A stretch of 64,000 bases of DNA from Macrostomum lignano. Lineage: Eukaryota. The notes beneath the pieces were generated by a model that ran no database searches, was not told the DNA's origin, and saw only the letters and a program-made list of their open reading frames with translations. Numbering within the stretch: the first letter of the stretch is position 1; every line of letters starts with the position of its first letter. Location of the stretch: the NCBI GenBank assembly GCA_002269645.1, contig NIVC01000803.1:124001-188000 (forward strand). The letters run 5' to 3'. A program made the translations under genes and the position numbers. Below, in pieces: positions 8,940-61,707 of the stretch.

Positions 8940-9434
8940 ACAGAATCTGAACTTTTTTTCTTGGTCTGCAACACAGTTTGAAGCAAGCTGTCCTGCAGAA
9001 GATACTAGAATTATATTTAATAAAATTGTTTCTTTTATTTATTTATTTTATTAGAACTCTTGTTAACAAAAAGTTAAAAAAACCTGCTTGCTAATCGAGG
9101 ACAGACAACTCTTACTAATTAGCCTGGGTATGCTGTGAAATTCAAGGCTAATAATTTCCTCTTTTGTACCTAGACTTGCATCCCCGTTTCTTTGGTACAT
9201 CTCAGCTGCCCTGTCCGTGTGTGCTACTAACACTACTATTATTATTATTTATTTACGATTGGTAAATTAGTGAGCTGCTGTGTTTATTTTTATTAGTTAG
9301 ACCGTTTTTTTCAACCAGTATGTAAATATTTATCGCTTTTGCGTCTCCGCTCCACCTGACTGTCGGCCCACAGACTCTGTTGTGGAGCGGCCGGAGTCCT
9401 TTATTGTCGGCTTGGTTTGCGCTTTGGCAACTCT

Positions 9435-9700
9435 TTGTCTTGTCTGTCCTGTCCGCCTCTGTCTGTGTGTCCGCCTGCTTGTCTTGTCTGTCCTGTCCGC
9501 CTCTGTCTGTGTGTCCGCCTGCTTGTCTTGTCTGTCCTGTCCGCCTCTGTGTGTCCGCCTGCTTGTCCTGTCTGTCCTGTCCGCCTGCTTATCTTGTCTG
9601 TCATGTCCGCCTGCTTGTCTTGTCTGTCCTGTCCGCCTCTGTCTGTCTGTCTGCCTGCCTGTCTGTCTGCCTGTCTGCTTGTGTCCGTCTGTTTGCCTGC
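9435..9700. repeat. Complex (GTCTGTCCTGTCCGCCT)-type repeat
   Basis: Low-complexity TG/C repeat; counterpart at about 17625-17890 differs slightly in length. Confidence 0.85.
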
Positions 9701-10346
9701 GTGCCCTGTATGTTTTTATACTGTTTCTTCGTGTTTTCAAATTTTTCAGCCATTGTTCACTACCCGCTCACTAGACTACTAATAGCTGTTGGCTAGTAGT
9801 ATGCGTTGAGAATTTCGACTTCGCCTTCTCTCATACAGATTGTTCACTTTACGTGCAGTGATGAAATTGACAGCTTGTTGTGTAGGTGGTAAACAATCAT
9901 TGCACCATCGGTGTTCATAGTGTCTAAATGCTGGGTTTTTTAAAGTTAATTTTATTTGTTTAAATGCTGACTTGTGCATAAGAGTTTTCCCCTCATTTTT
10001 AAAATTACTGCGAGCTGGCTAATGCGAAATTCTCTATTGATGAGCCCTGCCAGTTATTGTACTTTCACTCCGTTTTTTGTGCTTACATGAATGAAGACTT
10101 TATAAATTTGAAGTGAGGCGGCTTTGCAAAAATGTTATAACTGCCGCCTGCGCTGCTCGCGATTGGGTTAGAAATCTTTGTAGCTCAGCCTTCTTTTTAT
10201 ATAAATATACATACTGCAGCCCCATCTGCCCGGAACAAAGTGAAGCTGTTTTTTACAATAAAAATGCCTAATTTACACTTTTACCTGCCTTCTGGCATTG
10301 GCTTCTTGTTTCATTTCTTTGCCTTTCTTTTCAACTGAGCACAGTT

Positions 10347-11281
10347 TGTGTCACGCTGCAGTTAGCACACGGGATGTTAGTGAGGCAGTACTAATCACAC
10401 TGCAGTTAGCACACGGGATGTTAGTGAGGCAGTGCTAATCACACTGCAGTTAGCACACGGGATGTTAGTGAGGCAGTGCTAATCACACTGCAGTTAGCAC
10501 ACAGGATGTTAGTGAGGCAGTGCTAATCACACTGCAGTTAGCACACGGGATGTTAGTGAGGCAGTGCTAATCACACTGCAGTTAGCACACAGGATGTTAG
10601 TGAGGCAGTGCTAATCACACTGCAGTTAGCACACGGGATGTTAGTGAGGCAGTGCTAATCAGACTGTAGTTAGCACACGGGATGTTAGTGAAGCAGTGCT
10701 AATCAGACTGCAGTTAGCACACGGGATGTTAGTGAGGCAGTGCTAATCAGACTGCAGTTAGCACACAGGAAGTTAGTGAAGCAGTGCTAACCACACTGCA
10801 GTTAGCACACGGGATGTCAGTGAGGCAGTGCTAATCACACTGCAGTTAGCACACGGGATGTTAGTGAAGCAGTGCTAATCACACTGCAGTTAGCACACGG
10901 GATGTTAGTGAGGCAGTGCTAATCACACTGCAGTTAGCACACAGGAAGTTAGTGAAGCAGTGCTAACCACACTACAGTTAGCACACGGGATGTTAGTGAG
11001 GCAGTGCTAATCAGACTGCAGTTAGCACACGGGATGTTAGTGAAGCTGTGCTAACCACACTGCAGTTAGCACACGGGATGTTAGTGAGGCAGTGCTAATC
11101 AGACTGCAGCTAGCACACGGGATGTTAGTGAGGCAGTGCTAATCACACTGCAGTTAGCACACGGGATGTTAGTGAAGCAGTGCTAATCAGACTGCAGTTA
11201 GCACACGGGATGTTAGTGAGGCAGTGCTAATCACACTGCAGTTAGCACACGGGATGTTAGTGAGGCAGTGCTAATCAGACT
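10347..11281. repeat. 44-bp minisatellite (CACTGCAGTTAGCACACGGGATGTTAGTGAGGCAGTGCTAATCA)n
   Basis: About 21 units with an internal inverted pair TTAGCAC/GTGCTAA; duplicated at 18541-19475. Confidence 0.95.
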
Positions 11282-11898
11282 AGGTTTATCGCAGTCAACT
11301 TGACTCGAATATTATTCATAATCTTTTCTGTCATTTGGTAGCTCAGACGTACCTACTAAAAGTGCGACTCTGTGTATCTATGCAATACTCTAAGGCATGT
11401 AAGTCCTTAGAATTTTTTAGAATTTCTGTCGTGGACTTCTGTCTGAATTGCATTTTGATAAAAAATGCATAAATAAAGGTTATCTTTCTGCAGCACAGTA
11501 CTGTATGCATAGGAATTATAAGGTAGACAGAACTGCAAGCTCACAGAGAATGTGTAATAAACTAAAATTTTTTAGAAAAGTAGAAGTAGAACTTTTGTTA
11601 AACTTAGTTATCGTTAGTTGTGTGCTATTGTTAGAGTTTTCTAGTCTCAGAAAATGAACCGCTCAAAAAGAAGCAAAAAAGAAGGCAATAGAAAAGTCCA
11701 AAACAAGAATTGCTTGAATTATCGGCCTGCCTTGCAACTGGCGGTTTTACACACCTACAGCTGCAATGATATCAAACTGGTAGGCACATATCTGTATGAC
11801 AGTCAACCCTTCAATCCTTCAACCCCTTCAAGGGGACACGAACATTTGTATCCTAATTAGGATGGCAGCTCAACATCTCATACGAGTACAAGACACAA

Positions 11899-11990
11899 GG
11901 GGTTGTAGCCTAGTGCTCCGAGCATCGGACTCAAGACTGAAAGGTTGGTGCTTCGATTCACGACCCACCCGAAACAATTTTCGCATCTTT
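11899..11990 (+). mobile_element. tRNA-derived SINE family 1, head fragment (second copy 20093-20184)
   Basis: GGGGTTGTAGCCTAGTG...GCTTCGATTC...CCCACCCGAAACAATTT matches the heads at 30668 and 44612. Confidence 0.6.
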
Positions 11991-12459
11991 TGTAAGCTGG
12001 CTAATAGCTGTACACGTTTACTTGAGTCAGCTAGCTTAGTTTAGACAATTTCATTGCTAAAATCTTCTACCTTTCTGACTATAACGACGACTTCAAACGA
12101 CTTGATTAACTTCAAGTCTGACATGGTGACAATTGAACACCGACTTCTGTAGCCAATTTCCAAGGTCTGCTGCTGCAGTTAACTGAATATTCGCTGTATT
12201 TAAGCAAAGTTAATTGAATTATGCTGGCTCTCAGCCTTTGGCAAAAGTCTAGCTGGCTTGAATGTCCAATCCGAGGGCTGCTTGCTGGTCTATGAGTCGA
12301 GAGTTTTGCCTTTAAAACAGAATTCATAGTCGTCTGTTGGAAATAAACTGATCCATTTAGTTATAAGCTGTTCCTGACTTCTGTTCCTGGTAACTCCTAG
12401 TGGTCCTTGCTTTTAGCTTTGGAGGCCAACAGGCCTGATCAAATCCTGCTGCCACGCCG

Positions 12460-13840
12460 TCAGGCCCAGCTGGCGAGGTCGCTGCTGATTCTCTTCCGCC
12501 AGGCCGCCATCTCGGCTCCGCTGTCGTAGGGCAGATCAACCGTGGCGTCGAAGTGAGGCAGCAGGACGCAGTGTTTGCGCAACGGGTTACTATAGAAACC
12601 AACGCAGCCGAGGCGCCATTTGCAGGCGAGAGCGCAGGCAGCCTCGGTGATCTCGCCGTAGGCGCTGACGTCGATCGTCTCGCTGCAGCCCGGCCCGGTC
12701 TGCGAGTAGCCTACAATGTCCGCCTGCTCGAATTCGCCATTGTGCAGCGGCACGCAGCCTGCACCTCCGGTGCCGCCGATGCAGCTGCCAGCCGGGTGCT
12801 CGCAGTGGTAGCGCGCGTCCGTCCAGCAGTTGACATCGTGCAGCCGGTTCTTCTCGCCGTGGTGCAGCACGCAGTTCTGCGTGCCTCCCTGATTGCCGGG
12901 CTCTCCGGAGGCCCACCAAGCGGAGCTGGTCAGGTTCATCTCCCGCAAACCCGGCATCACCTGCGAACATCGGGTTTAGAAAAGAAAACTTTCACTTATA
13001 TATCAGGATCTTGGAGCCATCATCTCTCAGCAAGGTTAAACAGTTACTTGTTGAACGGAGGCTTCGGGCTTACCAAGTGAAGCCTCTTTGTTGGCTTTGC
13101 GACCAAAGTTCACTTGCAAATGATGCAGCAATGATACATACATGTACAAAATGCAGCAATATGTACAACATACATGGCAATGCATACAACATAAAACTGA
13201 TAACTATAAACTGATTACACCTGCCCTAGTGGCCAGATGTGCAACTGACAGCTCAGCCGCAGCTATTCCGCGGCGCATCTGAAGGCTGCGTACGGCTGTT
13301 CAATCCAAGGACTTTTGGGTCGCCACACACACCCTCAATTACCCCAGCTAATGCTGGCACCCATTTTACAGCTGGGTGAACTGAAGCAATGCAGAGTTGT
13401 CTTGCTCAAGGACACAAATTGTTCCAGTGGGGTCGGTAATCGAACCCCCGACTCCTATTTTTAGATAAATACAACATACATGGAAATGCAACAAACAATC
13501 CGCGCATCACCTGCCAACCATCGCGACTTCGATTCCGTTCGCGCAGCGCGTCGGTGACGCCCAGGAGAATCCAGCCGCTGGTGAACTGGGGCAGCGGCCT
13601 GGCTCGGGCGTAGGTGTTCGGCGTCAGCAGCCGGTGGCCCAGACGGGCGCAGACGTCCAGAGCGTCGCAGAATTTCAATGTACCGTTGTACACCGGGCTG
13701 AGGCAGGTCGGGGGACCGGCGCTGTCGTTCAGTAAGGAGTAACCGGGACTACAGGCGGCATTAGCCGCCGTCTGCTGCGGGAGACACGACAGCAGAAGCA
13801 GCAGACACGGGGCCGCGATGGCAGACACTTTGCACAGCAT
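12460..13840 (-). CDS. Secreted C-type lectin domain + PAN/apple-like domain protein, 276 aa; exons 13840-13511, 12960-12460
   Basis: Hydrophobic signal peptide (APCLLLLLSCLPQQTAANAA); CTLD cysteine pattern with WILLGVTD, W..GEPGN...NCV...LHDVNC...YHCE; then EAACALAC....GCVGFYS.....CVL (PAN-like). Phase-0 GT-AG intron. Confidence 0.85.
13211..13455 (-). mobile_element. SINE family 1 inside the lectin intron (second copy 21405-21649)
   Basis: Reverse complement matches 44660-44952 (GGTTCGATT...GTGTCCTTGAGCAAGACA...TCACCCAGCTGTAAAATGGG...GGGCAGGTGTAATCA). Confidence 0.85.
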
Positions 13841-14082
13841 TTTCTCGCCGGCAGTAAGCTTGTCTCGGTATTGGCAAAGCAAACCCTCAAACATTGAAGA
13901 GTAATGATGAATTTTCTCGGAAAGGCATTTATAAAGAAAGGATGGAGTAAAAATTCTCAGCCAAAGAAGCGTTCTCTCTGCGTCCCCCCCCCAGCCTCTT
14001 TTTGTTGGCTGTTTCTGAGAAATTGCAGCTGCTCTCTCCCCCTCCATAGCCGCCCCTAAGGGATTTTAGTGAAGCAATTGCG

Positions 14083-14095
14083 GTTGCTTAGCAAC
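14083..14095. promoter_or_regulatory. Candidate RFX X-box GTTGCTTAGCAAC (second copy 22277-22289)
   Basis: Matches the RFX consensus GTNRC(N0-3)RGYAAC about 245 bp upstream of the lectin ATG; function inferred. Confidence 0.45.
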
Positions 14096-14469
14096 ATTGC
14101 TGTAGCTCTGCATCCGTTAGCATTAATTAGTCAGGCAAACTGAACCAACCGTATAGGGACTGAGAAGGATTTGGGCTTGGTAAAATTAAAAATAGGAAGG
14201 CAGTAGACTACAGGCAAAGGCAATCATGCAATCAAAGAAATTTCAATGCATGTAGATTTAAGACTTTATATAGTTGTTTTCCCATTCCGGAAATTTCATT
14301 AAATGAGTTTCTAAGTTCGAGGCTCTTGGTGGAGGACGCTTGCAGTTTGGCTTTACACGATGTGGTAACCATTACCGTACTTGCTGATTATCATCTTCGT
14401 GTATTTTATGAGGTCATTCAACTTGGTTCTCAGTTTCATGCTACCAGCAGTGATACTCCGAGTGCAGCT

Positions 14470-14810
14470 GCAGTGTCATCCAGTGAGGTATGCTGTTGAC
14501 GTTCCTGTTTAGTTTTTAACGTTCTTCCTGCCGAAGCGATACGACCCCTGGTTCGATTCCCTTACGCTGCCACAGTAATTTGTGGCAATTGTGCACGAAA
14601 ATTGGCCATGGGAAGCTTGTCGTACGATTCATACTCACGAGGGCCACGTCCCAAGGCACAGAGAGTGCACATGCTTGACATTTAGACAGTCAGGGCCGCT
14701 GTACACCCTGTGTGAGCGTGTGTGTGAGTGCGTGCTCAGGAGTCAGCGGAATGAGCAGAATTCCCTCAGCGCTGGTTATGGGACATTGTCGCCGAAGGCG
14801 TTCATCTATT
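14470..14810 (+). mobile_element. SINE family 2 with tRNA-like head (second copy about 22664-23004)
   Basis: GCAGTGT/ACGCTGC could form an acceptor-like stem, with B-box GGTTCGATTCC but an unpaired T-stem. Body matches the 3200 and 43120 copies. Confidence 0.7.
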
Positions 14811-14850
14811 GAGACAATATTATTATTGATTTTATCTGCAACAACGATAT

Positions 14851-14998
14851 GGCTTTCTGCTGCGGCGATGCGTGGATGGATACGAATTATAGGACAGGCG
14901 ACTTCTGCAAACTTTTTCTACGCCTACGATCTCGCCCTGCTGTCCACGACCGCTAAAAGGGCGCCTAGACAGCTGAGCAGCCTGTTTGCACCGTTGCG
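14851..14998 (+). mobile_element. Old degraded RTE reverse-transcriptase fragment (second copy about 23045-23192)
   Basis: Aligns by eye to 23855-23995 of the young RTE; translates GFLLRRCV...YAYDLALLSTTAKRAPRQL versus DGFLLQRRV...YADDLALLSSTVEGAQRQL. Confidence 0.75.
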
Positions 14999-16472
14999 CC
15001 TGGATATTTTTTGTATTCCATTCGCGCATTGCCAGCAGGGCACGCACGCACCGTGTGTTGCAGAAACGTGACCGAATCACTAACTCTGTCTATTCAGCTG
15101 GGCAAACGAAACAAGCTATATATACAATATATCATGTATTGTGCAAACCTTGTGGAAATAAATAATCCATTTTTCTCGTTTAACAATTTCTAAGGCATAT
15201 CATATAGTTGAAACTACATTATAACATTATCGATATTGTGTTAGTATGTGATTATCGAGCGGGGAAAATAAATACTGCATAATATTATACATGTACATAT
15301 ACTCTTAGCTCGGTTACGTCATATCATTGCGGCAGGTGTTGCGTCTACTATACCCACATGCAGTTTACGGTAAAATGCAGTTGTGTATTTTTTAAATCTT
15401 AATTGAATCTTTATTTGCATGCATGCATACAATACCTTTCATGGGTATTGTAATTTTTGGGTAAAAAGCGAGTCAAAAAGGGGGCAGGATCCAATACATG
15501 TGGACAAGCCGTTTATTAACTGAACTCAATTTTGAGCTTTTAAGATTCTGCTTCTTCCTCTTCCTGTTTCTTTCTTTAAGGTCCACTTATAATAGCATCG
15601 TGCGATTGTGTATATGCAAAGACTGTATGCAAACACTACTGAAATACTGTATACGGCTAGGGGCAGGAGACAAACAATTTATGCGAAATTTATTGAATGC
15701 GAATTTTATAAATTATTTACAAATGTCATTGTTTCATGCGGAGCTTCATTTTTACTAGAAAATTCCTCTTTCTTCAAATCCTGAAGTTGGACTTTCAAAA
15801 TAACTGTTTAAGGTATGCATTAAAATTTAATGATTAACCCAGTGAAAAAAATGATATGGATTCCATGTGGATTTTTCATATGAAATCCATATGTGCATTT
15901 GTCTCCGTCCATCCATGTGGAATCAAGATATGGATATGTAAGGTGTATTTATGTACAGTAGTGAGTCACTGGCACACAAAGAATAAACACACTGATGTAA
16001 ATATTGATATCTTTAGAGTTGCGCTGCGCATATGATATAATATATAATTTGAAATTGACATTTTCAATAGCATTAATTAATTAACAATAATATAATGCAT
16101 CAGAATTAGAACAGTCAGAAACATGCTGCTGCCAATTGCCAGAATGCTGCTTCTTCAGGTCAGGTGAGCAACCTTAGAAAAGAAAGGGGTTAAATTACAG
16201 AATTTTATAACAGATTGATGACAGATTTTGTAATAGATTTTGATAGATTTTGATGACAGAAAAAAATAAGTTTATAACTAAAACTTACCATTGCTTCACA
16301 AAAGGTAGCATTTGAGATATTAAATTCAAATTCCAAGTAGCTTTGCAAGCTTCTTCAAATGCAAGACCAAGGTGACATCCAAGTTTGAGGATGGGTCATG
16401 TAATGTTAGGTTTTTCTCCTGAACTTTCGCACCTCTATCCTGAACTAAGTTGATCTCACGCACTCTTTACAG

Positions 16473-17129: not shown

Positions 17130-20100
17130 ACAGAATCTGAACTTTTTTTCTTGGTCTGCAACACAGTTTGAAGCAAGCTGTCCTGCAGAAGATACTAGAA
17201 TTATATTTAATAAAATTGTTTCTTTTATTTATTTATTTTATTAGAACTCTTGTTAACAAAAAGTTAAAAAAACCTGCTTGCTAATCGAGGACAGACAACT
17301 CTTACTAATTAGCCTGGGTATGCTGTGAAATTCAAGGCTAATAATTTCCTCTTTTGTACCTAGACTTGCATCCCCGTTTCTTTGGTACATCTCAGCTGCC
17401 CTGTCCGTGTGTGCTACTAACACTACTATTATTATTATTTATTTACGATTGGTAAATTAGTGAGCTGCTGTGTTTATTTTTATTAGTTAGACCGTTTTTT
17501 TCAACCAGTATGTAAATATTTATCGCTTTTGCGTCTCCGCTCCACCTGACTGTCGGCCCACAGACTCTGTTGTGGAGCGGCCGGAGTCCTTTATTGTCGG
17601 CTTGGTTTGCGCTTTGGCAACTCTTTGTCTTGTCTGTCCTGTCCGCCTCTGTCTGTGTGTCCGCCTGCTTGTCTTGTCTGTCCTGTCCGCCTCTGTCTGT
17701 GTGTCCGCCTGCTTGTCTTGTCTGTCCTGTCCGCCTCTGTCTGTGTGTCCGCCTGCTTGTCCTGTCTGTCCTGTCCGCCTGCTTATCTTGTCTGTCATGT
17801 CCGCCTGCTTGTCTTGTCTGTCCTGTCCGCCTCTGTCTGTCTGTCTGCCTGCCTGTCTGTCTGCCTGTCTGCTTGTGTCCGTCTGTTTGCCTGCGTGCCC
17901 TGTATGTTTTTATACTGTTTCTTCGTGTTTTCAAATTTTTCAGCCATTGTTCACTACCCGCTCACTAGACTACTAATAGCTGTTGGCTAGTAGTATGCGT
18001 TGAGAATTTCGACTTCGCCTTCTCTCATACAGATTGTTCACTTTACGTGCAGTGATGAAATTGACAGCTTGTTGTGTAGGTGGTAAACAATCATTGCACC
18101 ATCGGTGTTCATAGTGTCTAAATGCTGGGTTTTTTAAAGTTAATTTTATTTGTTTAAATGCTGACTTGTGCATAAGAGTTTTCCCCTCATTTTTAAAATT
18201 ACTGCGAGCTGGCTAATGCGAAATTCTCTATTGACGAGCCCTGCCAGTTATTGTACTTTCACTCCGTTTTTTGTGCTTACATGAATGAAGACTTTATAAA
18301 TTTGAAGTGAGGCGGCTTTGCAAAAATGTTATAACTGCCGCCTGCGCTGCTCGCGATTGGGTTAGAAATCTTTGTAGCTCAGCCTTCTTTTTATATAAAT
18401 ATACATACTGCAGCCCCATCTGCCCGGAACAAAGTGAAGCTGTTTTTTACAATAAAAATGCCTAATTTACACTTTTACCTGCCTTCTGGCATTGGCTTCT
18501 TGTTTCATTTCTTTGCCTTTCTTTTCAACTGAGCACAGTTTGTGTCACGCTGCAGTTAGCACACGGGATGTTAGTGAGGCAGTACTAATCACACTGCAGT
18601 TAGCACACGGGATGTTAGTGAGGCAGTGCTAATCACACTGCAGTTAGCACACGGGATGTTAGTGAGGCAGTGCTAATCACACTGCAGTTAGCACACAGGA
18701 TGTTAGTGAGGCAGTGCTAATCACACTGCAGTTAGCACACGGGATGTTAGTGAGGCAGTGCTAATCACACTGCAGTTAGCACACAGGATGTTAGTGAGGC
18801 AGTGCTAATCACACTGCAGTTAGCACACGGGATGTTAGTGAGGCAGTGCTAATCAGACTGTAGTTAGCACACGGGATGTTAGTGAAGCAGTGCTAATCAG
18901 ACTGCAGTTAGCACACGGGATGTTAGTGAGGCAGTGCTAATCAGACTGCAGTTAGCACACAGGAAGTTAGTGAAGCAGTGCTAACCACACTGCAGTTAGC
19001 ACACGGGATGTCAGTGAGGCAGTGCTAATCACACTGCAGTTAGCACACGGGATGTTAGTGAAGCAGTGCTAATCACACTGCAGTTAGCACACGGGATGTT
19101 AGTGAGGCAGTGCTAATCACACTGCAGTTAGCACACAGGAAGTTAGTGAAGCAGTGCTAACCACACTACAGTTAGCACACGGGATGTTAGTGAGGCAGTG
19201 CTAATCAGACTGCAGTTAGCACACGGGATGTTAGTGAAGCTGTGCTAACCACACTGCAGTTAGCACACGGGATGTTAGTGAGGCAGTGCTAATCAGACTG
19301 CAGCTAGCACACGGGATGTTAGTGAGGCAGTGCTAATCACACTGCAGTTAGCACACGGGATGTTAGTGAAGCAGTGCTAATCAGACTGCAGTTAGCACAC
19401 GGGATGTTAGTGAGGCAGTGCTAATCACACTGCAGTTAGCACACGGGATGTTAGTGAGGCAGTGCTAATCAGACTAGGTTTATCGCAGTCAACTTGACTC
19501 GAATATTATTCATAATCTTTTCTGTCATTTGGTAGCTCAGACGTACCTACTAAAAGTGCGACTCTGTGTATCTATGCAATACTCTAAGGCATGTAAGTCC
19601 TTAGAATTTTTTAGAATTTCTGTCGTGGACTTCTGTCTGAATTGCATTTTGATAAAAAATGCATAAATAAAGGTTATCTTTCTGCAGCACAGTACTGTAT
19701 GCATAGGAATTATAAGGTAGGCAGAACTGCAAGCTCACAGAGAATGTGTAATAAACTAAAATTTTTTAGAAAAGTAGAAGTAGAACTTTTGTTAAACTTA
19801 GTTATCGTTAGTTGTGTGCTATTGTTAGAGTTTTCTAGTCTCAGAAAATGAACCGCTCAAAAAGAAGCAAAAAAGAAGGCAATAGAAAAGTCCAAAACAA
19901 GAATTGCTTGAATTATCGGCCTGCCTTGCAACTGGCGGTTTTACACACCTACAGCTGCAATGATATCAAACTGGTAGGCACATATCTGTATGACAGTCAA
20001 CCCTTCAATCCTTCAACCCCTTCAAGGGGACACGAACATTTGTATCCTAATTAGGATGGCAGCTCAACATCTCATACGAGTACAAGACACAAGGGGTTGT

Positions 20101-20653
20101 AGCCTAGTGCTCCGAGCATCGGACTCAAGACTGAAAGGTTGGTGCTTCGATTCACGACCCACCCGAAACAATTTTCGCATCTTTTGTAAGCTGGCTAATA
20201 GCTGTACACGTTTACTTGAGTCAGCTAGCTTAGTTTAGACAATTTCATTGCTAAAATCTTCTACCTTTCTGACTATAACGACGACTTCAAACGACTTGAT
20301 TAACTTCAAGTCTGACATGGTGACAATTGAACACCGACTTCTGTAGCCAATTTCCAAGGTCTGCTGCTGCAGTTAACTGAATATTCGCTGTATTTAAGCA
20401 AAGTTAATTGAATTATGCTGGCTCTCAGCCTTTGGCAAAAGTCTAGCTGGCTTGAATGTCCAATCCGAGGGCTGCTTGCTGGTCTATGAGTCGAGAGTTT
20501 TGCCTTTAAAACAGAATTCATAGTCGTCTGTTGGAAATAAACTGATCCATTTAGTTATAAGCTGTTCCTGACTTCTGTTCCTGGTAACTCCTAGTGGTCC
20601 TTGCTTTTAGCTTTGGAGGCCAACAGGCCTGATCAAATCCTGCTGCCACGCCG

Positions 20654-22034
20654 TCAGGCCCAGCTGGCGAGGTCGCTGCTGATTCTCTTCCGCCAGGCCG
20701 CCATCTCGGCTCCGCTGTCGTAGGGCAGATCAACCGTGGCGTCGAAGTGAGGCAGCAGGACGCAGTGTTTGCGCAACGGGTTACTATAGAAACCAACGCA
20801 GCCGAGGCGCCATTTGCAGGCGAGAGCGCAGGCCGCCTCGGTGATCTCGCCGTAGGCGCTGACGTCGATCGTCTCGCTGCAGCCCGGCCCGGTCTGCGAG
20901 TAGCCTACAATGTCCGCCTGCTCGAATTCGCCATTGTGCAGCGGCACGCAGCCTGCACCTCCGGTGCCGCCGATGCAGCTGCCAGCCGGGTGCTCGCAGT
21001 GGTAGCGCGCGTCCGTCCAGCAGTTGACATCGTGCAGCCGGTTCTTCTCGCCGTGGTGCAGCACGCAGTTCTGCGTGCCTCCCTGATTGCCGGGCTCTCC
21101 GGAGGCCCACCAAGCGGAGCTGGTCAGGTTCATCTCCCGCAAACCCGGCATCACCTGCGAACATCGGGTTTAGAAAAGAAAACTTTCACTTATATATCAG
21201 GATCTTGGAGCCATCATCTCTCAGCAAGGTTAAACAGTTACTTGTTGAACGGAGGCTTCGGGCTTACCAAGTGAAGCCTCTTTGTTGGCTTTGCGACCAA
21301 AGTTCACTTGCAAATGATGCAGCAATGATACATACATGTACAAAATGCAGCAATATGTACAACATACATGGCAATGCATACAACATAAAACTGATAACTA
21401 TAAACTGATTACACCTGCCCTAGTGGCCAGATGTGCAACTGACAGCTCAGCCGCAGCTATTCCGCGGCGCATCTGAAGGCTGCGTACGGCTGTTCAATCC
21501 AAGGACTTTTGGGTCGCCACACACACCCTCAATTACCCCAGCTAATGCTGGCACCCATTTTACAGCTGGGTGAACTGAAGCAATGCAGAGTTGTCTTGCT
21601 CAAGGACACAAATTGTTCCAGTGGGGTCGGTAATCGAACCCCCGACTCCTATTTTTAGATAAATACAACATACATGGAAATGCAACAAACAATCCGCGCA
21701 TCACCTGCCAACCATCGCGACTTCGATTCCGTTCGCGCAGCGCGTCGGTGACGCCCAGGAGAATCCAGCCGCTGGTGAACTGGGGCAGCGGCCTGGCTCG
21801 GGCGTAGGTGTTCGGCGTCAGCAGCCGGTGGCCCAGACGGGCGCAGACGTCCAGAGCGTCGCAGAATTTCAATGTACCGTTGGACACCGGGCTGAGGCAG
21901 GTCGGGGGACCGGCGCTGTCGTTCAGTAAGGAGTAACCGGGACTACAGGCGGCATTAGCCGCCGTCTGCTGCGGGAGACACGACAGCAGAAGCAGCAGAC
22001 ACGGGGCCGCGATGGCAGACACTTTGCACAGCAT
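20654..22034 (-). CDS. Secreted CTLD + PAN protein, duplicate copy; exons 22034-21705, 21154-20654
   Basis: ORF intact; differs from copy 1 by Tyr-to-Ser (13689 vs 21883) and one synonymous change seen by eye. Confidence 0.85.
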
Positions 22035-23464
22035 TTTCTCGCCGGCAGTAAGCTTGTCTCGGTATTGGCAAAGCAAACCCTCAAACATTGAAGAGTAATG
22101 ATGAATTTTCTCGGAAAGGCATTTATAAAGAAAGGATGGAGTAAAAATTCTCAGCCAAAGAAGCGTTCTCTCTGCGTCCCCCCCCCAGCCTCTTTTTGTT
22201 GGCTGTTTCTGAGAAATTGCAGCTGCTCTCTCCCCCTCCATAGCCGCCCCTAAGGGATTTTAGTGAAGCAATTGCGGTTGCTTAGCAACATTGCTGTAGC
22301 TCTGCATCCGTTAGCATTAATTAGTCAGGCAAACTGAACCAACCGTATAGGGACTGAGAAGGATTTGGGCTTGGTAAAATTAAAAATAGGAAGGCAGTAG
22401 ACTACAGGCAAAGGCAATCATGCAATCAAAGAAATTTCAATGCATGTAGATTTAAGACTTTATATAGTTGTTTTCCCATTCCGGAAATTTCATTAAATGA
22501 GTTTCTAAGTTCGAGGCTCTTGGTGGAGGACGCTTGCAGTTTGGCTTTACACGATGTGGTAACCATTACCGTACTTGCTGATTATCATCTTCGTGTATTT
22601 TATGAGGTCATTCAACTTGGTTCTCAGTTTCATGCTACCAGCAGTGATACTCCGAGTGCAGCTGCAGTGTCATCCAGTGAGGTATGCTGTTGACGTTCCT
22701 GTTTAGTTTTTAACGTTCTTCCTGCCGAAGCGATACGACCCCTGGTTCGATTCCCTTACGCTGCCACATTCATTTGTGGCAATTGTGCACGAAAATTGGC
22801 CATGGGAAGCTTGTCGTACGATTCATACTCACGAGGGCCACGTCCCAAGGCACAGAGAGTGCACATGCTTGACATTTAGACAGTCAGGGCCGCTGTACAC
22901 CCTGTGTGAGCGTGTGTGTGAGTGCGTGCTCAGGAGTCAGCGGAATGAGCAGAATTCCCTCAGCGCTGGTTATGGGACATTGTCGCCGAAGGCGTTCATC
23001 TATTGAGACAATATTATTATTGATTTTATCTGCAACAACGATATGGCTTTCTGCTGCGGCGATGCGTGGATGGATACAAATTATAGGACAGCTGCGGCTT
23101 CTGCAAACTTTTTCTACGCCTACGATCTCGCCCTGCTGTCCACGACCGCTAAAAGGGCGCCTAGACAGCTGACAGCCTGTTTGCACCGTTGCGCCTGGAT
23201 ATTTTTTGTATTCCATTCGCGCATTGCCAGCAGGGCACGCACGCACCGTGTGTTGCAGAAACGTGACCGAATCACTAACTCTGTCTATTCAGCTGGGCAA
23301 ACGAAACAAGCTATATATGCAAGCTATATACTATATACATATATCTGCATGTATTGTGCAAACCTTGTGGAAATAAATAATCCATTTTTTCTCGTTTAAC
23401 AATTTCTAAGGCATATCATAGTTGAAACTACATTATAACATTATCGATATTGTGTTAGTATGTG

Positions 23465-24718
23465 CTGGATCCGTACCTGCGCCCAGAGCAGAACGGGTTC
23501 CGGCCCCATCGCGGCACAGTGGCGCAGATCCTGGCTCTTCGCCGAGTCATCGAGGAGGCGCGGATTCGTCAGTCGATACTGATTTTAATCTTTATTGATT
23601 TCAAGAAGGCATTCGACTCGGTTGTCAGAGCCGTGCTTCCAATGGTGCTCCGCGCGTACAACGTGCCTGAGCAGCTGATCTCCGCCGTCATGGCGATGTA
23701 CCGTGATACGACAGCTGCTGTGACAACACCGGACGGCCTATCGGACTCCTTTGAGACATCCTCCGGAGTGCTTCAGGGAGATACGCTGGCGCCGTTTCTG
23801 TTCGTCCTGGTGCTTGACTGGGTGCTGCGGACTGCTCTTCCTACCGACGACGACGGTTTTCTGCTGCAGCGACGCGTGGGTCGACGTCAACCGGAGAAGC
23901 GGCTCAGCGTGCTTGGCTACGCCGACGACCTCGCCCTGCTGTCCTCGACCGTCGAGGGCGCCCAACGGCAGCTGGACAGGCTGGTTGCCGTTGCGGCGAG
24001 TGTCGGCCTGGTGGTCAACACGCAGAAGACCGTTGTGCTCTGCGTGCCGGACGACATCGAGGCTGCAATATTTTGCCGAGGCGCTGACGGGCAGGCGACC
24101 GAACTCCCGCGATGTCAGCAGTTCGTCTACCTCGGCGGTCTGGTTCCAGACGCTCGCGAGGACCTGCGACGCCGCCGCGGGCTTGCCTGGGCTGCCTTTC
24201 GTTCTGTGAGGGCAGTCCTGCAGTCCGAGGCCCTACCGGACCGCCAGAGGGCGGCGCTGTTCCAGGCGGTAATCGAGACCGTCCTGATGTACAACGCCGA
24301 GACCTGGACGCTGACGGACTCACTCGAACAGCAAGTCGATGCGGCGCACGCTGGTCTGCTGCGCGCCGCCTTCAACATCGGCGTCGAGCGAGTCACCAAC
24401 GCGGCACTCTATCGCCGCGCTGGCCTGCCACGTCCAAGTGATCTACTGCGCCGTCGGCGACTCCAGCTCGCAGGCCATCTCATCCGCGCCGAGTCGTACT
24501 GCCCACAGCCGGTGCAGGAGGTGCTGCTGCTCACGCTGCAGGCACCCTACCGGCGAGGTCAAGCGCGAACTCGGCGTTATGTCGACTGTCTGCTGGCTGA
24601 CGCCGGCGCCCCGGACACTGCCGGTGGCGCGGCCTTTGTTCGCGCCCAAGCCATGAAGCGCGCCCTGTGACGCTGACTTTTACCATCATGACAGCGTATT
24701 TTGTTGTTGTTGTGTTGT
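23465..24718 (+). mobile_element. 5'-truncated RTE-clade non-LTR retrotransposon with uninterrupted RT ORF (23465-24670)
   Basis: LRPEQNGFRPHRG, IDFKKAFDSV, GVLQGDTLAPFLF and YADD motifs. Short 3' UTR ends in (TTG)n. 12-bp TSD TGTTAGTATGTG at 23453-23464 and 24719-24730; empty site at 15239-15250. Confidence 0.95.
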
Positions 24719-27303: not shown

Positions 27304-28897
27304 ATGTCCGTCATCATTCCCGACGGCTTCACCCAGCTGCTGCAGGAGTTCACCGTGGCCGTCCTTCGCACCCGGCCTCCAAATTTGATCGAATTCGCTG
27401 CGGCGCATTTCAGACGGCTGGAGCAGCAGCAGCCCGGCACCGCGTCGAAGGTGCAGTTCCAGCCGGCCCAGGAGCAGCAGCGGCGGCGCCACTCCGAATC
27501 TGACGCCGAAGACGAAGAGGCCCAAAAAAACGAGGACGACTCGGAAGAGGTGAGCGACGCCGACGCATCCCCACCGCCGCCGCCTCGTTCGGCCGCTCGG
27601 GGCGCCGGAGGCCGCCGGGTCAGCGTAGCGGCGCCCTCCTTCGACCCGGAGCAGCACGAGGCCACCTACGAGCGTCGTGTTGTGCCTAAAAGCGACGAAC
27701 AACGCCGACGCTTGATGGAGGCGATGCGGCACATCCTGCTGTTCCGCAGTCTGGAGAGGGCCGATCTTGGTCACGTGATCGATGCCATGGAGGAGCGCCT
27801 GGTGTCAGCTGGGACCTGCGTGATCGAGCAGGACCAGGAGGGCGACAATTTCTACGTTGTCGAAAAAGGCTTCTTCGAGGCGTTCGTACGCGACAGAGCA
27901 ACCGGCACCAGCCGCCACGTGCTGACCTACAAGAACGAGGGCTCGTTTGGCGAGCTGGCGCTGATGTATTACTGCCCAAGGGCCGCCACCATTGTGGCCA
28001 AGACTGACGGCGTGCTGTGGTCGCTGGACATGGAGACCTTCCAGCAGAAGGTGCTCATGGCGGCTTTCAAGCACCGCAAGAAGTACGAAGCCTTTCTAGC
28101 GGCCGTGCCGCTGCTGGACGAGATGACGCAGTACGAACGGCAAAATGTGGCGGATGCGCTGAGGTACGTCCTGTCAGCTCTGCCCACTTCACACTAATCT
28201 ACCCCACTTCACACTAATCTACCCCACTTCACACTAATCTACCCCACTTCATTCCAATCTACCCCACTTCACTCCAATCTACCCCACTTCACACTAATCT
28301 ACCCCACTTCACACTAATCTACCCCACTTCACACTAATCTACCCCACTTCACACTAATCTACCCCACTTCACACTAATCTACCCCACTTCACACTAATCT
28401 ACCCCCTTCACACTAATCTATCCCACTTCACACTAATCTACCCCACTTCATTCCAATCTACCCCACTTCATTCCAAGCTACCCCACTTCACTCCAATCTA
28501 CCCCACTTCGCCTCGCAGGGAGCGCGAATTCTCGGATGGCGAGCCCATTATCCTGCAGGGCGACGTCGGCAACGAGATGTTCTTCATCGAGGACGGCAGT
28601 GTGCGGGTGATGCGCCGGCACAACGCCGCCGACAGCGGCCTGGAGACTCAGGTGAACCTGCTCGGCAAGGGTGCCTATTTCGGCGAGCTGGCGCTCATCA
28701 CCAAGCAGCCGCGAGTCGCCAGCTGCTACGCCGTGGGCCCCACGCGGGTCTGCGTGCTGCACGTGTCCGACTTCGAGCGCCTGCTCGGCCCCTGCCTGAC
28801 GGTCATGCGTCGCAACATTGACGCTTATAAGCGGCAGCTGGCCGAAATTTTTGGCGGCGATGAGGCGAGCGTACCGCTGCCCAGGGCCGATTGTTGA
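27304..28897 (+). CDS. PRKAR2: cAMP-dependent protein kinase type II regulatory subunit, 412 aa; exons 27304-28163, 28519-28897
   Basis: RII D/D domain ([32 protein letters not shown]), phosphorylatable inhibitor site RRVSV, two cNMP domains ([14 protein letters not shown]; [15 protein letters not shown]); phase-2 intron. Confidence 0.93.
28186..28509. repeat. 20-bp minisatellite (ACCCCACTTCACACTAATCT)n filling the PKA-R intron
   Basis: About 16 units running almost from donor to acceptor. Confidence 0.95.
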
Positions 28898-34161: not shown

Positions 34162-42254
<8,093 letters not shown>

Positions 42255-45264: not shown

Positions 45265-45305
<41 letters not shown>

Positions 45306-55158: not shown

Positions 55159-57486
55159 TCACGGCAGATCGAAGGACCAAACGCAATTTGCGTCCGAATC
55201 GGCCACAAACAGTCGGACAAGGCCCTTCTTCGGATACTCGTACACGGACAGGCCAACCGGACGGCGCATGTCCGGTCGGGCCAGACGGTAGACGAGGTCG
55301 CCGTTGGCCGAGATAGCGTTCACGCAGCCGCCTGCGGAGTCTGTGGCGTACACCAGGCCGCGGCTGTCCACTGCGCAGGCTGAGGGAGCGCCCAGGCTGT
55401 AGCTGAAATTGCTGCTTCCGCCCTGGCTTCCGCCCTGGCTTCCGCCCTGGCTTCCGCCCTGGCTTCCGCCCTGGCTTCCGCCCTGGCTTCCGCCCTGGCT
55501 TCCGCCCTGGCTTCCGCCCTGGCTTCCGCCCTGGCTTCCGCCCTGGCTTCCGCCCTGGCTTCCGCCCTGGCTTCCGCCCTGGCTTCCGCCCTGGCTTCCG
55601 CCCTGGCTTCCGCCCTGGCTTCCGCCCTGGCTTCCGCCCTGGCTTCCGCCCTGGCTTCCGCCCTGGCTTCCGCCCTGGCTTCCGCCCTGGCTTCCGCCCT
55701 GGCTTCCGCCCTGGCTTCCGCCCTGGCTTCCGCCCTGGCTTCCGCCCTGGCTTCCGCCCTGGCTTCCGCCCTGGCTTCCGCCCTGGCTTCCGCCCTGGCT
55801 TCCGCCCTGGCTTCCGCCCTGGCTTCCGCCCTGGCTTCCGCCCTGGCTTCCGCCCTGGCTTCCGCCCTGGCTTCCGCCCTGGCTTCCGCCCTGGCTTCCG
55901 CCCTGGCTTCCGCCCTGGCTTCCGCCCTGGCTTCCGCCCTGGCTTCCGCCCTGGCTTCCGCCCTGGCTTCCGCCCTGGCTTCCGCCCTGGCTTCCGCCCT
56001 GGCTTCCGCCCTGGCTTCCGCCCTGGCTTCCGCCCTGGCTTCCGCCCTGGCTTCCGCCCTGGCTTCCGCCCTGGCTTCCGCCCTGGCTTCCGCCCTGGCT
56101 TCCGCCCTGGCTTCCGCCCTGGCTTCCGCCCTGGCTTCCGCCCTGGCTTCCGCCCTGGCTTCCGCCCTGGCTTCCGCCCTGGCTTCCGCCCTGGCTTCCG
56201 CCCTGGCTTCCGCCCTGGCTTCCGCCCTGGCTTCCGCCCTGGCTTCCGCCCTGGCTTCCGCCCTGGCTTCCGCCCTGGCTTCCGCCCTAGCTTCTGCCCT
56301 GGCTTCCGCCCTGGCTTCCGCCCTGGCTTCCGCCCTGGCTTTCGCCGCCAGCAACCGGAGGGAAGACGGCGACAACTCGCTGGGTGAATTCGCACAGCTT
56401 GGCCAGGCAGGCCGGAGCCACCGAGCAGATGTACAGATGCGGCGGCTTCCTGGCCAGGCCGAACGCCGTCTCGCTGCCGTCCCAGCGCCGCCGGAACAGG
56501 TGGCTGACATCCGTCGGCTCCCAGCGGGCGCGCGTCGAAATGAGAAGCGCCGAGGCATCAACGCGACTGGCATCGTCGTCCAGGACCTCCTCGCCAGCGG
56601 CTTCGGCTGTCACCACGGCGAAAGCGAACAGCTCCTCGGGCTTGTCGCCGAAGCTCAGGCCGAAGGGCAGGCAGATTGCCCGGTCGGTGAGGCCGAAGTC
56701 TGCGCCAACCAGTCGCCGAATGACGCCGCCGGAGAGGTCCATCAGCAGCACCGACGAGCCGGCGCCGCCTCCGGTCGGCTTGACAACCGACACGGCAAGC
56801 AAACCGTCTGAGTTGCTGGCCTCCAGGCCGGCGATGAAGTCGCCAGCCTCCAGGCCCGCTGGGCGCAGCGGCACCGTCAGGCGAGTCGGCGGCGGCAATA
56901 CCAGCGACAGCCGACAGACGGAGCCGCCCTCAGCGTGCGCCACGGCCAGGCAAGGAGGCGGCACCTCCAGCCAGCCGGCCTCCCCCGCCAGCTCCGCCTC
57001 GTCGCCGTTCACCAGTCGGAGGCGCGGCTGATCGGCGACGTCCCGGACTCGAATCCGAAGGTGGCAAGTCCGGGCGCAGGCGGCCACCAGGCTGGGCGCG
57101 AGGATGCCCGGCGCGGCGATGGCCGTCGCTCGCTGCGCCGGCACGGCGGCATCCAGCCGGCCAACGCGCGGCGGCGGCGTGGCATCGGCGAGGCGGAGCC
57201 GCGGCAGCAGGGTGCCCAGCCGGTGCCGCAGGTTGCCAAGGTAGCCAATGACGTCGCTCTGATCGGCAAAGTTGCAGCAGCGGCTGTCAGCATCGGCCTG
57301 CAGCTGGGATTCAACAGTCAGACGCTGCTCGGCGAGGTCCTTCAGCAGTCGGTCCCGGTGCTGCGTCAGCAGCTCATGCAGCCGGTTGAACTCGGCGTCC
57401 AGCTCGACCGCCTGCCAGTCGAAGAGGTCGAGACGCCGACGCAGCTGCTCAGCTGAGAGGCGGTCGCGGTTCGGAGTTCGACTCAT
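55159..57486 (-). CDS. Coiled-coil + NHL-repeat protein (TRIM-NHL-like, no RING seen), interrupted by a 12-bp repeat array; tentative exons 57486-56356 and 55422-55159 (464 aa)
   Basis: N-terminal heptad helix, then NHL-like blades ([13 protein letters not shown]; [20 protein letters not shown]; RPVGLSV...[14 protein letters not shown]). Both flanks are in the same frame. The splice model is uncertain (weak GTTGCT donor, purine-rich acceptor). Confidence 0.65.
55415..56340. repeat. Nearly perfect 12-bp repeat (CTTCCGCCCTGG)x~77
   Basis: Directly visible; only the units near 56280-56300 and the first unit vary. Confidence 0.98.
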
Positions 57487-57807: not shown

Positions 57808-58428
<621 letters not shown>

Positions 58429-58906: not shown

Positions 58907-60266
58907 ATGCAGCAGCAGAACTCGGCGCTGGCGCCAATCTCTGAGGGTGCCGCTAGGGCGCCACAGCCGCCGCCTGTCAATGAGCAACAGCGGCAGCTGC
59001 TGCAGCCGAGACGGAGTCTCCGGTATCCAACCTCGGTGACAACGCCGCTGTCGGAGCAACCCAGACGGCTCACCTTGATGCCGGCGCCCACCAGTGACAA
59101 GCCGACGACCGACGGTCACGTGGTGCCGAAACAGCGACGACAGTCTCGACGTCGGCCAAGCTCGATTCGCTCGTCGGAGCGAAGCCAGGGCCGTCCGTCG
59201 GCTGGAGTGCTGGCTGGCCTGGTGGAGAACACCTACCGGATGGGCCCGGCTCAGCCGTTTATTGTTGACGCTGCCGAGGCGCTGATTAAAGAGCGACTGG
59301 AGACAAATTTGAAGCGCTACAGCTACAATGCCCAGTCTGCCAAGGTGCGGTCCGCCTGCTGAGATCATGGGGTGATTCTCGTGTGGTTAATAGTGATTCT
59401 CGTGTAGTTAATAGTGATTCTCATGTGGTTAATAGTGATTCTCATGTGGTTAATAGTGATTCTCATGTGGTTAATAGTGATTCTCGTGTGGTTAATAGTG
59501 ATTCTCGTGTGGTTAATAGTGATTCTCATGTGGTTAATAGTGATTCTCATGTGGTTAATAGTGATTCTCGTGTAGTTAATAGTGATTCTCGTGTAGTTAA
59601 TAGTGATTCTCATGATGGCTAATAGTGATTCACGTGATTATTTATAGTGATTCTCATGATGGTTTTTTAGGTGATCCTTATTGTGGCTAATTGTGATTCT
59701 CATAATGGCTAGTTGTGGTTCTCTGGATGGCTGATTGTGATTCTCTCATGATGATTAATTGTAAATATCACGATGACGGTTATGGTGATTCTCATTATAA
59801 TTATTATGGTGATTCTCATGCTGGTTTATGGTTCCCGTGAAGGTTTCCCTCTTTTCACAGAAAGACACATGAATGATCCGTATATGGCTCAGTCCTAGTG
59901 ATTCCGGAGAGTCATCCAAGATTTGTGCATGATTCTAAAAGCACAAACCCCTTTCTTTCCGAAATAACTGTACACGTGCATGGCGATTCTGTCAGCCTGC
60001 ATCCGCTCTCGCATTTCAAGGTGATGTCGACCAACATGGCTCAGGAGATAAAAAACAAGATCAAACAGCAGCTGCTTCGGCAGGGCCCGAACTCCCGGTA
60101 CAAGCTGGTGGTGCTGGTCACCGTGACCGATGTGAACAGGCCAGCAGGGGAGTTCGCCTCCCGGATGCTCTGCCAGGCAGCCACAGGAGACGCCTGCGCC
60201 AAAGCCGAATTTCGCGGCAACAGGGCGGCCGCGTGGGCTGCGGTGTTCGCCCTCTACTGCGAGTAG
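58907..60266 (+). CDS. Tctex1-domain dynein light chain (TCTEX1D1/DYNLT5-like), 227 aa; exons 58907-59344, 60021-60266
   Basis: ENTYRMGP..PF...AEALIKERLE..L...SY and ...IK.KIK......RYKLVVLVTV...ASRML...D.CA.AEF.......WAAVFALYCE* follow the Tctex-1 pattern; long low-complexity N-terminus; phase-0 intron. Confidence 0.88.
59372..59640. repeat. 21-bp minisatellite (GTGATTCTC(G/A)TGTGGTTAATA)n in the Tctex1 intron
   Basis: Directly visible, degrading 3'-ward. Confidence 0.9.
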
Positions 60267-61122: not shown

Positions 61123-61707
61123 CTACACACTGCTCCGACGTTCCAAGCAACTCTGAGGACAAGCAGTGCCAGTCATCTTAGCATCTCTCTCCGCCGCTGC
61201 TATCCGGTCCAAGCGACGAAGAGCATCGCCCAGGCTGCACATGGCCAGACAGGCAGCTGATCCGTACGCAGCCAGGCTGATGCAGAATCCGCTTGCAGCG
61301 GCTGCGGCTGCGGACAAGAACGGCGTCTCCGCTGGCCACTGGAGCAGCGCAAAGTTGTACACCGCCTGAGCTGCAATGCACGGCAGCGCGCACGCGTTTA
61401 ACAGCGCCGTTCTCAGCGCCAACCTGAAGGCAACGGCGCTCCGCTGGTTTTCAGAAACCGCCAGCTGCAGTAGACGGGCAAGAGCAACCGAAGCGGCGCC
61501 GGCTGCCGCGTTGACGCCGGCGAAACCGAAGCCCAGAAGGCGAAGCGCCAAATCCTGACGGTTGGCGACGCCGCCAGTGGAAAGCGCCGACCGCGATAGC
61601 GACAGAAACATGGGCGGCACAGCGGCTAGAAGGCAGACAATGGCCAGCGACAGTTGAACTGTGGCTGCAAATTTTCTGCGACAGCAGCAGGAGCAGTAGT
61701 TGGGCAT
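61123..61707 (-). CDS. Single-exon hypothetical membrane protein, 194 aa, about 4 hydrophobic helices, Cys-rich N-terminus
   Basis: True ATG at 61707; GC-rich coding-like composition in an AT-rich context; no family recognised. Confidence 0.7.
   Translation of the reverse strand: MPNYCSCCCRRKFAATVQLSLAIVCLLAAVPPMFLSLSRSALSTGGVANRQDLALRLLGFGFAGVNAAAGAASVALARLLQLAVSENQRSAVAFRLALRTALLNACALPCIAAQAVYNFALLQWPAETPFLSAAAAAASGFCISLAAYGSAACLAMCSLGDALRRLDRIAAAERDAKMTGTACPQSCLERRSSV

Follow-up and report, generated by a model that had tools for sequence, protein, structure and literature searches.

Background

What becomes of a minisatellite of nearly one kilobase that sits in frame inside a gene, and is it translated, already an intron, or an intron in the making? 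The question is raised by a locus of the flatworm Macrostomum lignano in a stretch of 64,000 nucleotides (hereafter the window) that corresponds to NIVC01000803.1:124001-188000 (offset 124000) of assembly Mlig_3_7 (GCA_002269645.1). On its minus strand, an open reading frame (ORF) that ends in NHL-type propeller blades contains an array of 12-bp units, one of which has become a TAG stop codon. A preliminary description of this DNA had offered three options: expansion of a coding repeat that later yielded a null allele, an intron in the making that uses splice acceptors within the array, and readthrough of the stop codon.

Simple and tandem repeats account for 15% of the M. lignano genome, in which duplicated blocks amount to 180 Mb (PMC5730564), and Mlig_3_7 contains three subgenome copies (S, L1, and L2) whose single-nucleotide polymorphism divergence is 1.4-2.4% (PMC10733133), so that three copies of the locus are expected in this neopolyploid assembly. 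From a comparison of three such copies, and from the gene models and splice signals around the array, we conclude that the locus is a hypervariable minisatellite lying in frame within what is probably a coding exon, and that one of the three copies bears a nonsense variant.

Materials and methods

The public contig NIVC01000803.1 carries the same array and the same two variant positions as the window, and the coordinates of the neighbouring gene for Tctex1D, a protein of the Tctex-1 family, are equal at an offset of 124000. The genes of the window, which identify it as animal DNA, include a PKA type II regulatory subunit (PKA-RII), kinesin/DUF4472, cadherin exons, a Cys-loop receptor, and the Tctex-1 family member, and splicing of the PKA-RII gene gives a product with 100% identity to BOX15_Mlig028122g1 of M. 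lignano. Sister loci were located through the neighbouring Tctex1D protein. Array units were counted directly and with Tandem Repeats Finder (TRF), and splice sites were scored, leaving one out, with a weight matrix built from 11 introns, namely the nine of the window and two of a paralogue.

Results

Anatomy of the array

The array consists of exactly 77 units of CAGGGCGGAAGC (Table 1), preceded by a 9-nt partial unit, and TRF reports 77.8 copies at a 99% match. The preliminary description, which had counted about 77 in-frame copies of a 12-bp repeat, was right in its coordinates and in placing both flanks in the same frame: the array (56337-55414) joins 383 codons on its 5' side to 84 on its 3' side. 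Seventy-five of the 77 units are perfect, and the two variant units are adjacent. Unit 4, CAGGGCaGAAGC, carries a G>A change at 56295, at a CpG, that replaces Gly with Arg, and unit 5, tAGGGCGGAAGC, a C>T change at 56289 that turns CAG into TAG at 56289-56287, where, as had been noticed before, translation of the window copy ends after 399 aa. The array has three of the properties by which one recognizes coding variable-number tandem repeats (VNTRs): head-to-tail units within the range of 10-100 bp, a unit length that is a multiple of three and in frame on both sides, and a copy number that varies.

Two of these observations carry less information than they seem to. Because the 12-mer is free of stops in all six frames and its length is a multiple of three, an open array that keeps the frame follows automatically and is no evidence of coding. 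One stop among the three variants found in the long arrays of two copies is also unremarkable, since 1 of the 12 possible transitions in the unit creates a stop.

The host gene

The flanks have the composition of real exons, with a GC content at codon positions 1/2/3 of 0.76/0.51/0.83 against 0.68/0.42/0.80 for PKA-RII. The label "NHL gene" that the locus had been given holds for the last two blades: the Pfam NHL model (PF01436) scores 19.3 bits on the last 84 residues, just under its cut-off of 20, and an 86-aa piece with these blades matches, by phmmer against the PDB, the designed Pizza propellers (E=1.5e-17), PknD (E=8.8e-8), and the NHL domain of TRIM3 (E=5.7e-7). It does not extend to the N-terminal 383 residues, for which we found no Pfam match and no PDB match near the array. 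An AlphaFold2 single-sequence model with the array cut to one unit (mean pLDDT 39.5) is unusable for the propeller and is confident only in the first long N-terminal helix, residues 12-69. Judged from its sequence, the gene is best described as a lineage-specific NHL-like ORF whose function is plausible but unproven, and the array would lie between propeller blades. Native blade spacing is not claimed: the TRIM3 alignment is ungapped over the array site (62 versus 62), but no match is found when the search is made with only the 56 residues whose last one lies just beyond the site. Exact look-up did not find the 399-aa truncated product, or the first PKA-RII exon ORF, on record.

A 1.4-kb gap separates the NHL-like gene from the divergently oriented Tctex1D gene (a shared promoter region), and most of it is filled by (GACA)155 at 57809-58428, which is 10 units shorter on NIVC01003466.1.

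Three genomic copies

The array differs in length among the three copies, as the preliminary description had proposed to check, with 77 units in the window, 76 on NIVC01002331.1, and 14 on NIVC01003466.1. The flanks of the 76-unit copy are 1.3-1.8% diverged from those of the window, with 18 differences over 1404 coding and 16 over 900 non-coding positions, and those of the 14-unit copy are almost identical to the window's, with a single difference over the 1404 coding positions and none over the 900 non-coding ones. In all three copies the two array flanks share a common frame, and the 467 flank codons are open in each, with no frameshift despite many indels nearby. The stop is private to one of these three redundant genomic copies.

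Since a copy with flanks diverged by 1.3-1.8% carries 76 units, the array predates the separation of that copy from the window's and is not a very recent expansion. The near-perfect homogeneity that had been reported is confirmed, but the recent origin drawn from it is not. Had the arrays of 77 and 76 units diverged at the rate of the flanks, they should show 12-19 differences; with 3 variant units seen (P<=0.003), we attribute the uniformity to continuing turnover. Uniformity and length change fit the same processes, slippage or unequal exchange, and the 14-unit state is best read as a contraction by 63 units or as a collapse during assembly. Unit 4 is the variant unit in two copies, the G>A of the window and the C>T of the 14-unit copy falling on opposite sides of one CpG. 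This points to a greater age and stability of the first few units than of those that follow.

Errors of the assembly could imitate part of this pattern, in that the TAG and the adjacent G>A might be assembly or polishing errors, or the 14-unit array a collapse. The assembly is redundant and partly chimeric, with 93% of read pairs mapping to more than one locus (PMC10733133), and short-read polishing within a perfect repeat is presumably error-prone. Two transitions 6 nt apart are, however, atypical of long-read error, which is mostly indel; the 76- and 77-unit arrays were assembled independently on two contigs; and whole-unit length differences are general among copies, many arrays of the window varying between subgenome copies in such steps. 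We regard error as an improbable explanation.

Hardly any credence is due to the proposal that the TAG is decoded, whether by readthrough or by reassignment of the codon. In its favour, the gene itself ends in TGA, and the TAG stands in place of a CAG (Gln). However, TAG is an ordinary terminator in the neighbouring gene: a code in which TAG specifies Gln is ruled out by the TAG at 60264-60266, which ends Tctex1D exactly where the annotated product P0122 ends. PKA-RII ends in TGA, as in the standard code, and no known readthrough context follows the TAG of the array.

Gene models at the locus

The only gene model at the locus lies on NIVC01002331.1, a 5'-partial coding sequence of 116 aa that consists of the last 8 units and the 84-codon flank, all read as coding; its product was not found in the protein collection. 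No spliced model of the NHL-like gene is annotated on any of the three contigs, and the neighbouring genes with intronic arrays have full spliced models in the public annotation. That annotation is genome-guided from RNA-seq and omitted transcripts that overlap repeat annotations (PMC5730564), a rule that would be expected to drop a full-length model with an exonic array and not a spliced one. For the annotation of this model flatworm the consequence is a caution, as repeat-overlapping transcripts have been removed from the public gene set.

Splice signals around the array

The window contains 44 tandem arrays, which together occupy 30.5% of its length and of which 25 reach 300 bp or more. Nine introns are readable, all GT-AG, and seven of the nine are mostly minisatellite, each with its array set between short unique stretches at the 5' and 3' ends; an array within a gene is for this reason a priori likely to be intronic here. 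The NHL array could accordingly lie inside a conventional phase-2 GT-AG intron of 993 or 999 nt, with its donor, GCT|GTGCGA, at 56395 and its end at 55403 or 55397. The product would then be about 445 aa long, the TAG irrelevant, and the open frame through the intron coincidental. We consider this unlikely. The resulting layout of 58 nt, array, and 11-17 nt is that of the seven minisatellite introns; GTGCGA has the G at +5 that is present in 11 of 11 real donors, and its core resembles the real donors GTGCGG, GTACGT, and GTTCGA; the acceptors TTTCAG| and CTACAG| score 4.1 and 5.4 bits, inside the range of real acceptors, and pair with the donor in frame; and GC3, the GC content at third codon positions, is 63% (hand count) in the 19 codons upstream of the array against 82% in the whole 5' flank. 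The donor itself, however, scores 2.5 bits, below the 3.6-10.6 bits of all 11 real donors owing to its GCT exon side, yet still sixth among the 63 GT dinucleotides of the gene. An in-frame pair arises by chance in about 1 of 3 cases, and TTTCAG is lost in the copy on NIVC01002331.1, which reads TTTTGG. A two-exon model should have been easy for genome-guided annotation, as it was for the neighbours, and the sole model instead begins within the array. Splicing would also remove the NHL-strand-like segment RVVAVF, a weak point, as this segment alone matches nothing in the PDB.

The intron in the making of the preliminary description was of another kind, combining the donor CCG|GTTGCT at 56355 with any of the in-frame CAG acceptors of the array, of which there are about 76, to give a (GGSQ)n linker of variable length. 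Such splicing would preserve the frame, all GTs in the last 40 nt before the array being in phase 0 and the array CAGs ending in phase 0, and lineage-specific introns built of arrays do exist in the genome of M. lignano (see below). The signals nonetheless make the proposal very unlikely. The donor scores no better than 27 of the 63 GTs of the gene (itself included), all of which score at least equally high, and it has C at +5; of the two donor candidates only GTGCGA has the core seen in real donors of this genome. The CAG|GG acceptors of the array score -1.4 bits behind a purine-rich upstream tract, and the sole annotated model retains at least 8 units. The unit also contains no GT and lacks the AG plus GT from which introns arise by AGGT tandem duplication, unlike the array unit of a PKA-RII paralogue, which carries CAG|GTGAGG.

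Introns of the PKA-RII paralogues

Among the PKA-RII genes, paralogue P0028 has no introns, the window gene has one, in codon R287, and paralogue P0004 has two, after K263 and after Q343, splicing at which yields the annotated protein exactly. These three flatworm introns thus occupy three different positions, and all are mostly array. The mapped C-terminal part of the orthologue in the annelid Capitella has introns at Q288|G, ~P310|D, G328|E, and A351|V and none at the equivalents of R287 or Q343, the comparison covering this part only and leaving the K263 region unmapped. The array in intron 2 of P0004 (L007 2409-3116, NIVC01002140.1) has a 23-bp unit, TGGAGATGCAG|GTGAGGCTGGGA, which corresponds to the last 11 exon nucleotides plus the 5' splice site; 26 donor-like motifs of the form CAGGTRAR occur over the exon end and the intron, and a direct repeat, GCAG|GTGA, stands on either side of the intron. 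The PKA-RII introns look like lineage-specific intron gain tied to repeat expansion.

On account of this precedent, intron birth keeps a non-trivial residual probability for the NHL array as well. The array might be a transitional stage of a minisatellite-driven process active in M. lignano, in which exon arrays expand and cryptic sites, here GTGCGA at 56395 with the YAG at 55403 or 55397, start to remove them. We hold this to be rather unlikely; if it were true, a stop-bearing copy such as the window's would be rescued only by splicing. A literature search on intron gain in Macrostomum returned nothing relevant.

Weighing of the evidence

Several observations weigh against an exonic, translated array. 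The openness of the array is uninformative about coding, for the reason given above. No homologue of the array-less protein was found among 5.8 billion proteins, and none of the N-terminal 383 aa among 1.84 billion representatives; as these searches were empty, the array cannot be dated by an orthologue or paralogue or set against an ancestral intron. The ratio of non-synonymous to synonymous divergence (dN/dS) between the window copy and that on NIVC01002331.1 is 0.47, not significantly below 1 (p=0.11), and the function of the gene is for that reason not proven. None of the three contigs carries a full-length gene model, and NIVC01000803.1 and NIVC01003466.1 carry no model here at all, so that the evidence for retention in the mRNA is one partial annotation model. 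Around the array there is an in-frame GT...AG pair whose donor core is typical and whose layout is that of the array-filled introns nearby. Finally, a collapse during assembly could account for the 14-unit copy, and an error of polishing for the TAG.

Some of the same observations would also be expected if the ORF were decaying, or had never been functional, in all three copies, with the array and the TAG both neutral. The empty database searches, the dN/dS value, and the want of a full model on any contig agree with this, and an insert of 300 residues within a propeller is hard to square with folding. Against it stand the strong GC3 periodicity, as in real genes, the 467 flank codons open in three copies with no frameshift, the recognizable NHL blades, and the existence of a transcript-derived model. 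A gene without function is accordingly an alternative that we find doubtful.

Of the readings considered, the best is an in-frame exonic repeat with a sheltered nonsense allele, which we think somewhat better than an even bet, and retention of the array in the mRNA, likewise a little better than even, is well ahead of its removal by a conventional intron. The anatomy of the array, its three copies, their variation in length, the private stop, and the poor splice signals are observed; that the mature transcript keeps the array and that ribosomes translate it is what we infer. The option of a coding expansion followed by a null allele is thus the best supported of the three offered by the preliminary description, with the amendments that the expansion is not very recent and that the stop belongs to one of three copies.

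The history of the locus may then have been as follows. The array, one of very many minisatellites of M. lignano, would have arisen in place from a Gly/Ser-coding 12-mer, GGC GGA AGC CAG, inside the single coding exon of a lineage-specific NHL-like gene, probably in a loop ahead of the second-last propeller blade. Before the three subgenome copies of the neopolyploid diverged, it would already have been present, expanding and contracting without loss of frame to an insert (QGGS)n in which n ranges from 14 to 77; the frame survives growth and shrinkage because the unit is 12 bp long and stop-free in every frame. Replication slippage or unequal exchange would keep the array nearly uniform while changing its length. 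In the window copy, one C>T change presumably made the CAG a TAG; the product would be a truncated protein of 399 aa, and the copy would be null or hypomorphic, sheltered by two copies with intact frames.

Table 1. Positions and properties of the NHL-like gene, its copies, and the introns discussed (window coordinates unless another locus or a contig is named)
Feature	Position	Strand	Remarks
Whole ORF, putative lineage-specific NHL-like gene, TAG-interrupted at 56289-56287	55159..57486	-	ATG 57486-57484, TGA 55161-55159; intact in two other copies
5' flank, 383 codons	56338..57486	-	helical coiled-coil-like N-terminus, then strand-rich region without assigned family
Minisatellite, 77 units of CAGGGCGGAAGC, (QGGS)n in gene frame	55414..56337	-	924 bp; unit count and TRF
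Two private variants (G>A, C>T)	56287..56295	-	missing from both other copies
3' flank, 84 codons, two NHL-type propeller blades	55162..55413	-	Pfam NHL, phmmer against PDB
Proposed donor CCG|GTTGCT, phase 0	56350..56355	-	-1.6 bits, C at +5
Best conventional donor candidate GCT|GTGCGA, phase 2	56390..56395	-	58 nt upstream of array
Acceptor candidates TTTCAG| (exon from 55402) and CTACAG| (exon from 55396), phase 2	55397..55408	-	
Window copy of the locus	NIVC01000803.1		77 units; G>A in unit 4, C>T (TAG) in unit 5; stops at 399 aa
Second copy (L002)	NIVC01002331.1		76 units; unit 16 Ser>Ile; no array stop; 771-aa ORF
Third copy (L003)	NIVC01003466.1		14 units; unit 4 GGC>GGT, synonymous; no array stop; 523-aa ORF
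PKA-RII intron	28164-28518		mostly minisatellite
Kinesin introns	38366-39219; 39746-40172; 40664-40967; 41689-42170		mostly minisatellite
Cys-loop receptor intron	45796-45612		mostly minisatellite
Tctex1D intron	59345-60020		mostly minisatellite
PKA-RII paralogue regions	window 28164-28518; L007 1290-2179 and 2420-3309; L008 301-1464		

Other features of the window

Another in-frame exonic repeat is present in the Cys-loop receptor gene, where a (GCC/GGC)13.7 run at 45265-45305 on the minus strand encodes poly-Gly in a cytoplasmic-loop exon. A tandem segmental duplication of about 8.2 kb (about 9400-15800 and 17600-23460) contains two minisatellites and the ORFs 12460-14047 and 20654-22241, and the segment is apparently single-copy on the homoeologous contig NIVC01002331.1. 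A reverse-transcriptase ORF at 23462-24670 (RVT_1, E=1.8e-21) falls in about 1.25 kb of sequence (23464-24715) that the homoeologous contig lacks, and is probably a retroelement fragment inserted in the window copy only. Between 44600 and 44700 the plus strand carries a stretch that resembles the 3' half of a tRNA, GGTTCGATTCTCAACC; ARAGORN calls no tRNA near 44.6 kb, and the stretch may be a fragment of a tRNA-derived short interspersed element (SINE). A 194-aa ATG-to-stop ORF at 61123-61707 on the minus strand looks hydrophobic and like a membrane protein, and has no Pfam match, no gene model, and, by exact look-up, no record.

Discussion

By itself the locus is an ordinary example of something already known: a repeat that is unstable but in frame, and that has acquired a nonsense variant in one of the redundant copies of a polyploid genome. 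More interesting is the wider pattern, in which tandem arrays occupy about 30% of a 64-kb window and supply the material of most of its introns. Should the pattern prove general, M. lignano would be a rare animal in which to study recent intron gain and the passage from exon repeat to intron, with three subgenome copies serving as internal time points.

Among the closest known systems are the coding minisatellites and VNTRs of yeast cell-wall genes (Verstrepen et al. 2005, as cited in PMC2395259) and the exonic minisatellites of human mucins (PMC2065792), with which the array shares in-frame head-to-tail units that are multiples of three, large differences in copy number, and near-identical units kept so by slippage or unequal exchange. 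It differs in that its host is an orphan NHL-like gene and not a secreted or surface protein, in that the insert falls inside a folded-domain region, and in that the variation is between neopolyploid subgenome copies, with translation of the array here deduced. With the minisatellite introns of the same window (PKA-RII, kinesin/DUF4472, Tctex1D, and Cys-loop receptor) it has in common the kind of array, the instability of length, and the short unique sides. Those introns, however, have good GT(R/C)NG donors, YAG acceptors, and units that are mostly not multiples of three (4, 16, 20, 21, and 28 bp), whereas around the NHL array there are weak or cryptic sites only and the ORF continues.

Intron gain by repeat expansion or tandem duplication, as described in Cryptococcus (PMC2395259) and for the RdRp gene of potato (PMC4974935), likewise takes an expanding repeat within a gene as the source of a new intron and has its parallel within this genome in intron 2 of P0004. 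In the Cryptococcus and potato cases the repeated unit carries splice signals, whether as whole introns or as AGGT, whereas the NHL unit contains AG but no GT. As for the host protein, the TRIM-NHL proteins (TRIM2, TRIM3, TRIM71, and Brat) share with it a coiled-coil-like N-terminus followed by NHL-type blades, TRIM3 being the member matched in the PDB search; the flatworm gene differs from them in having no RING or B-box that we could find, no detectable orthologue, and two recognizable blades only.

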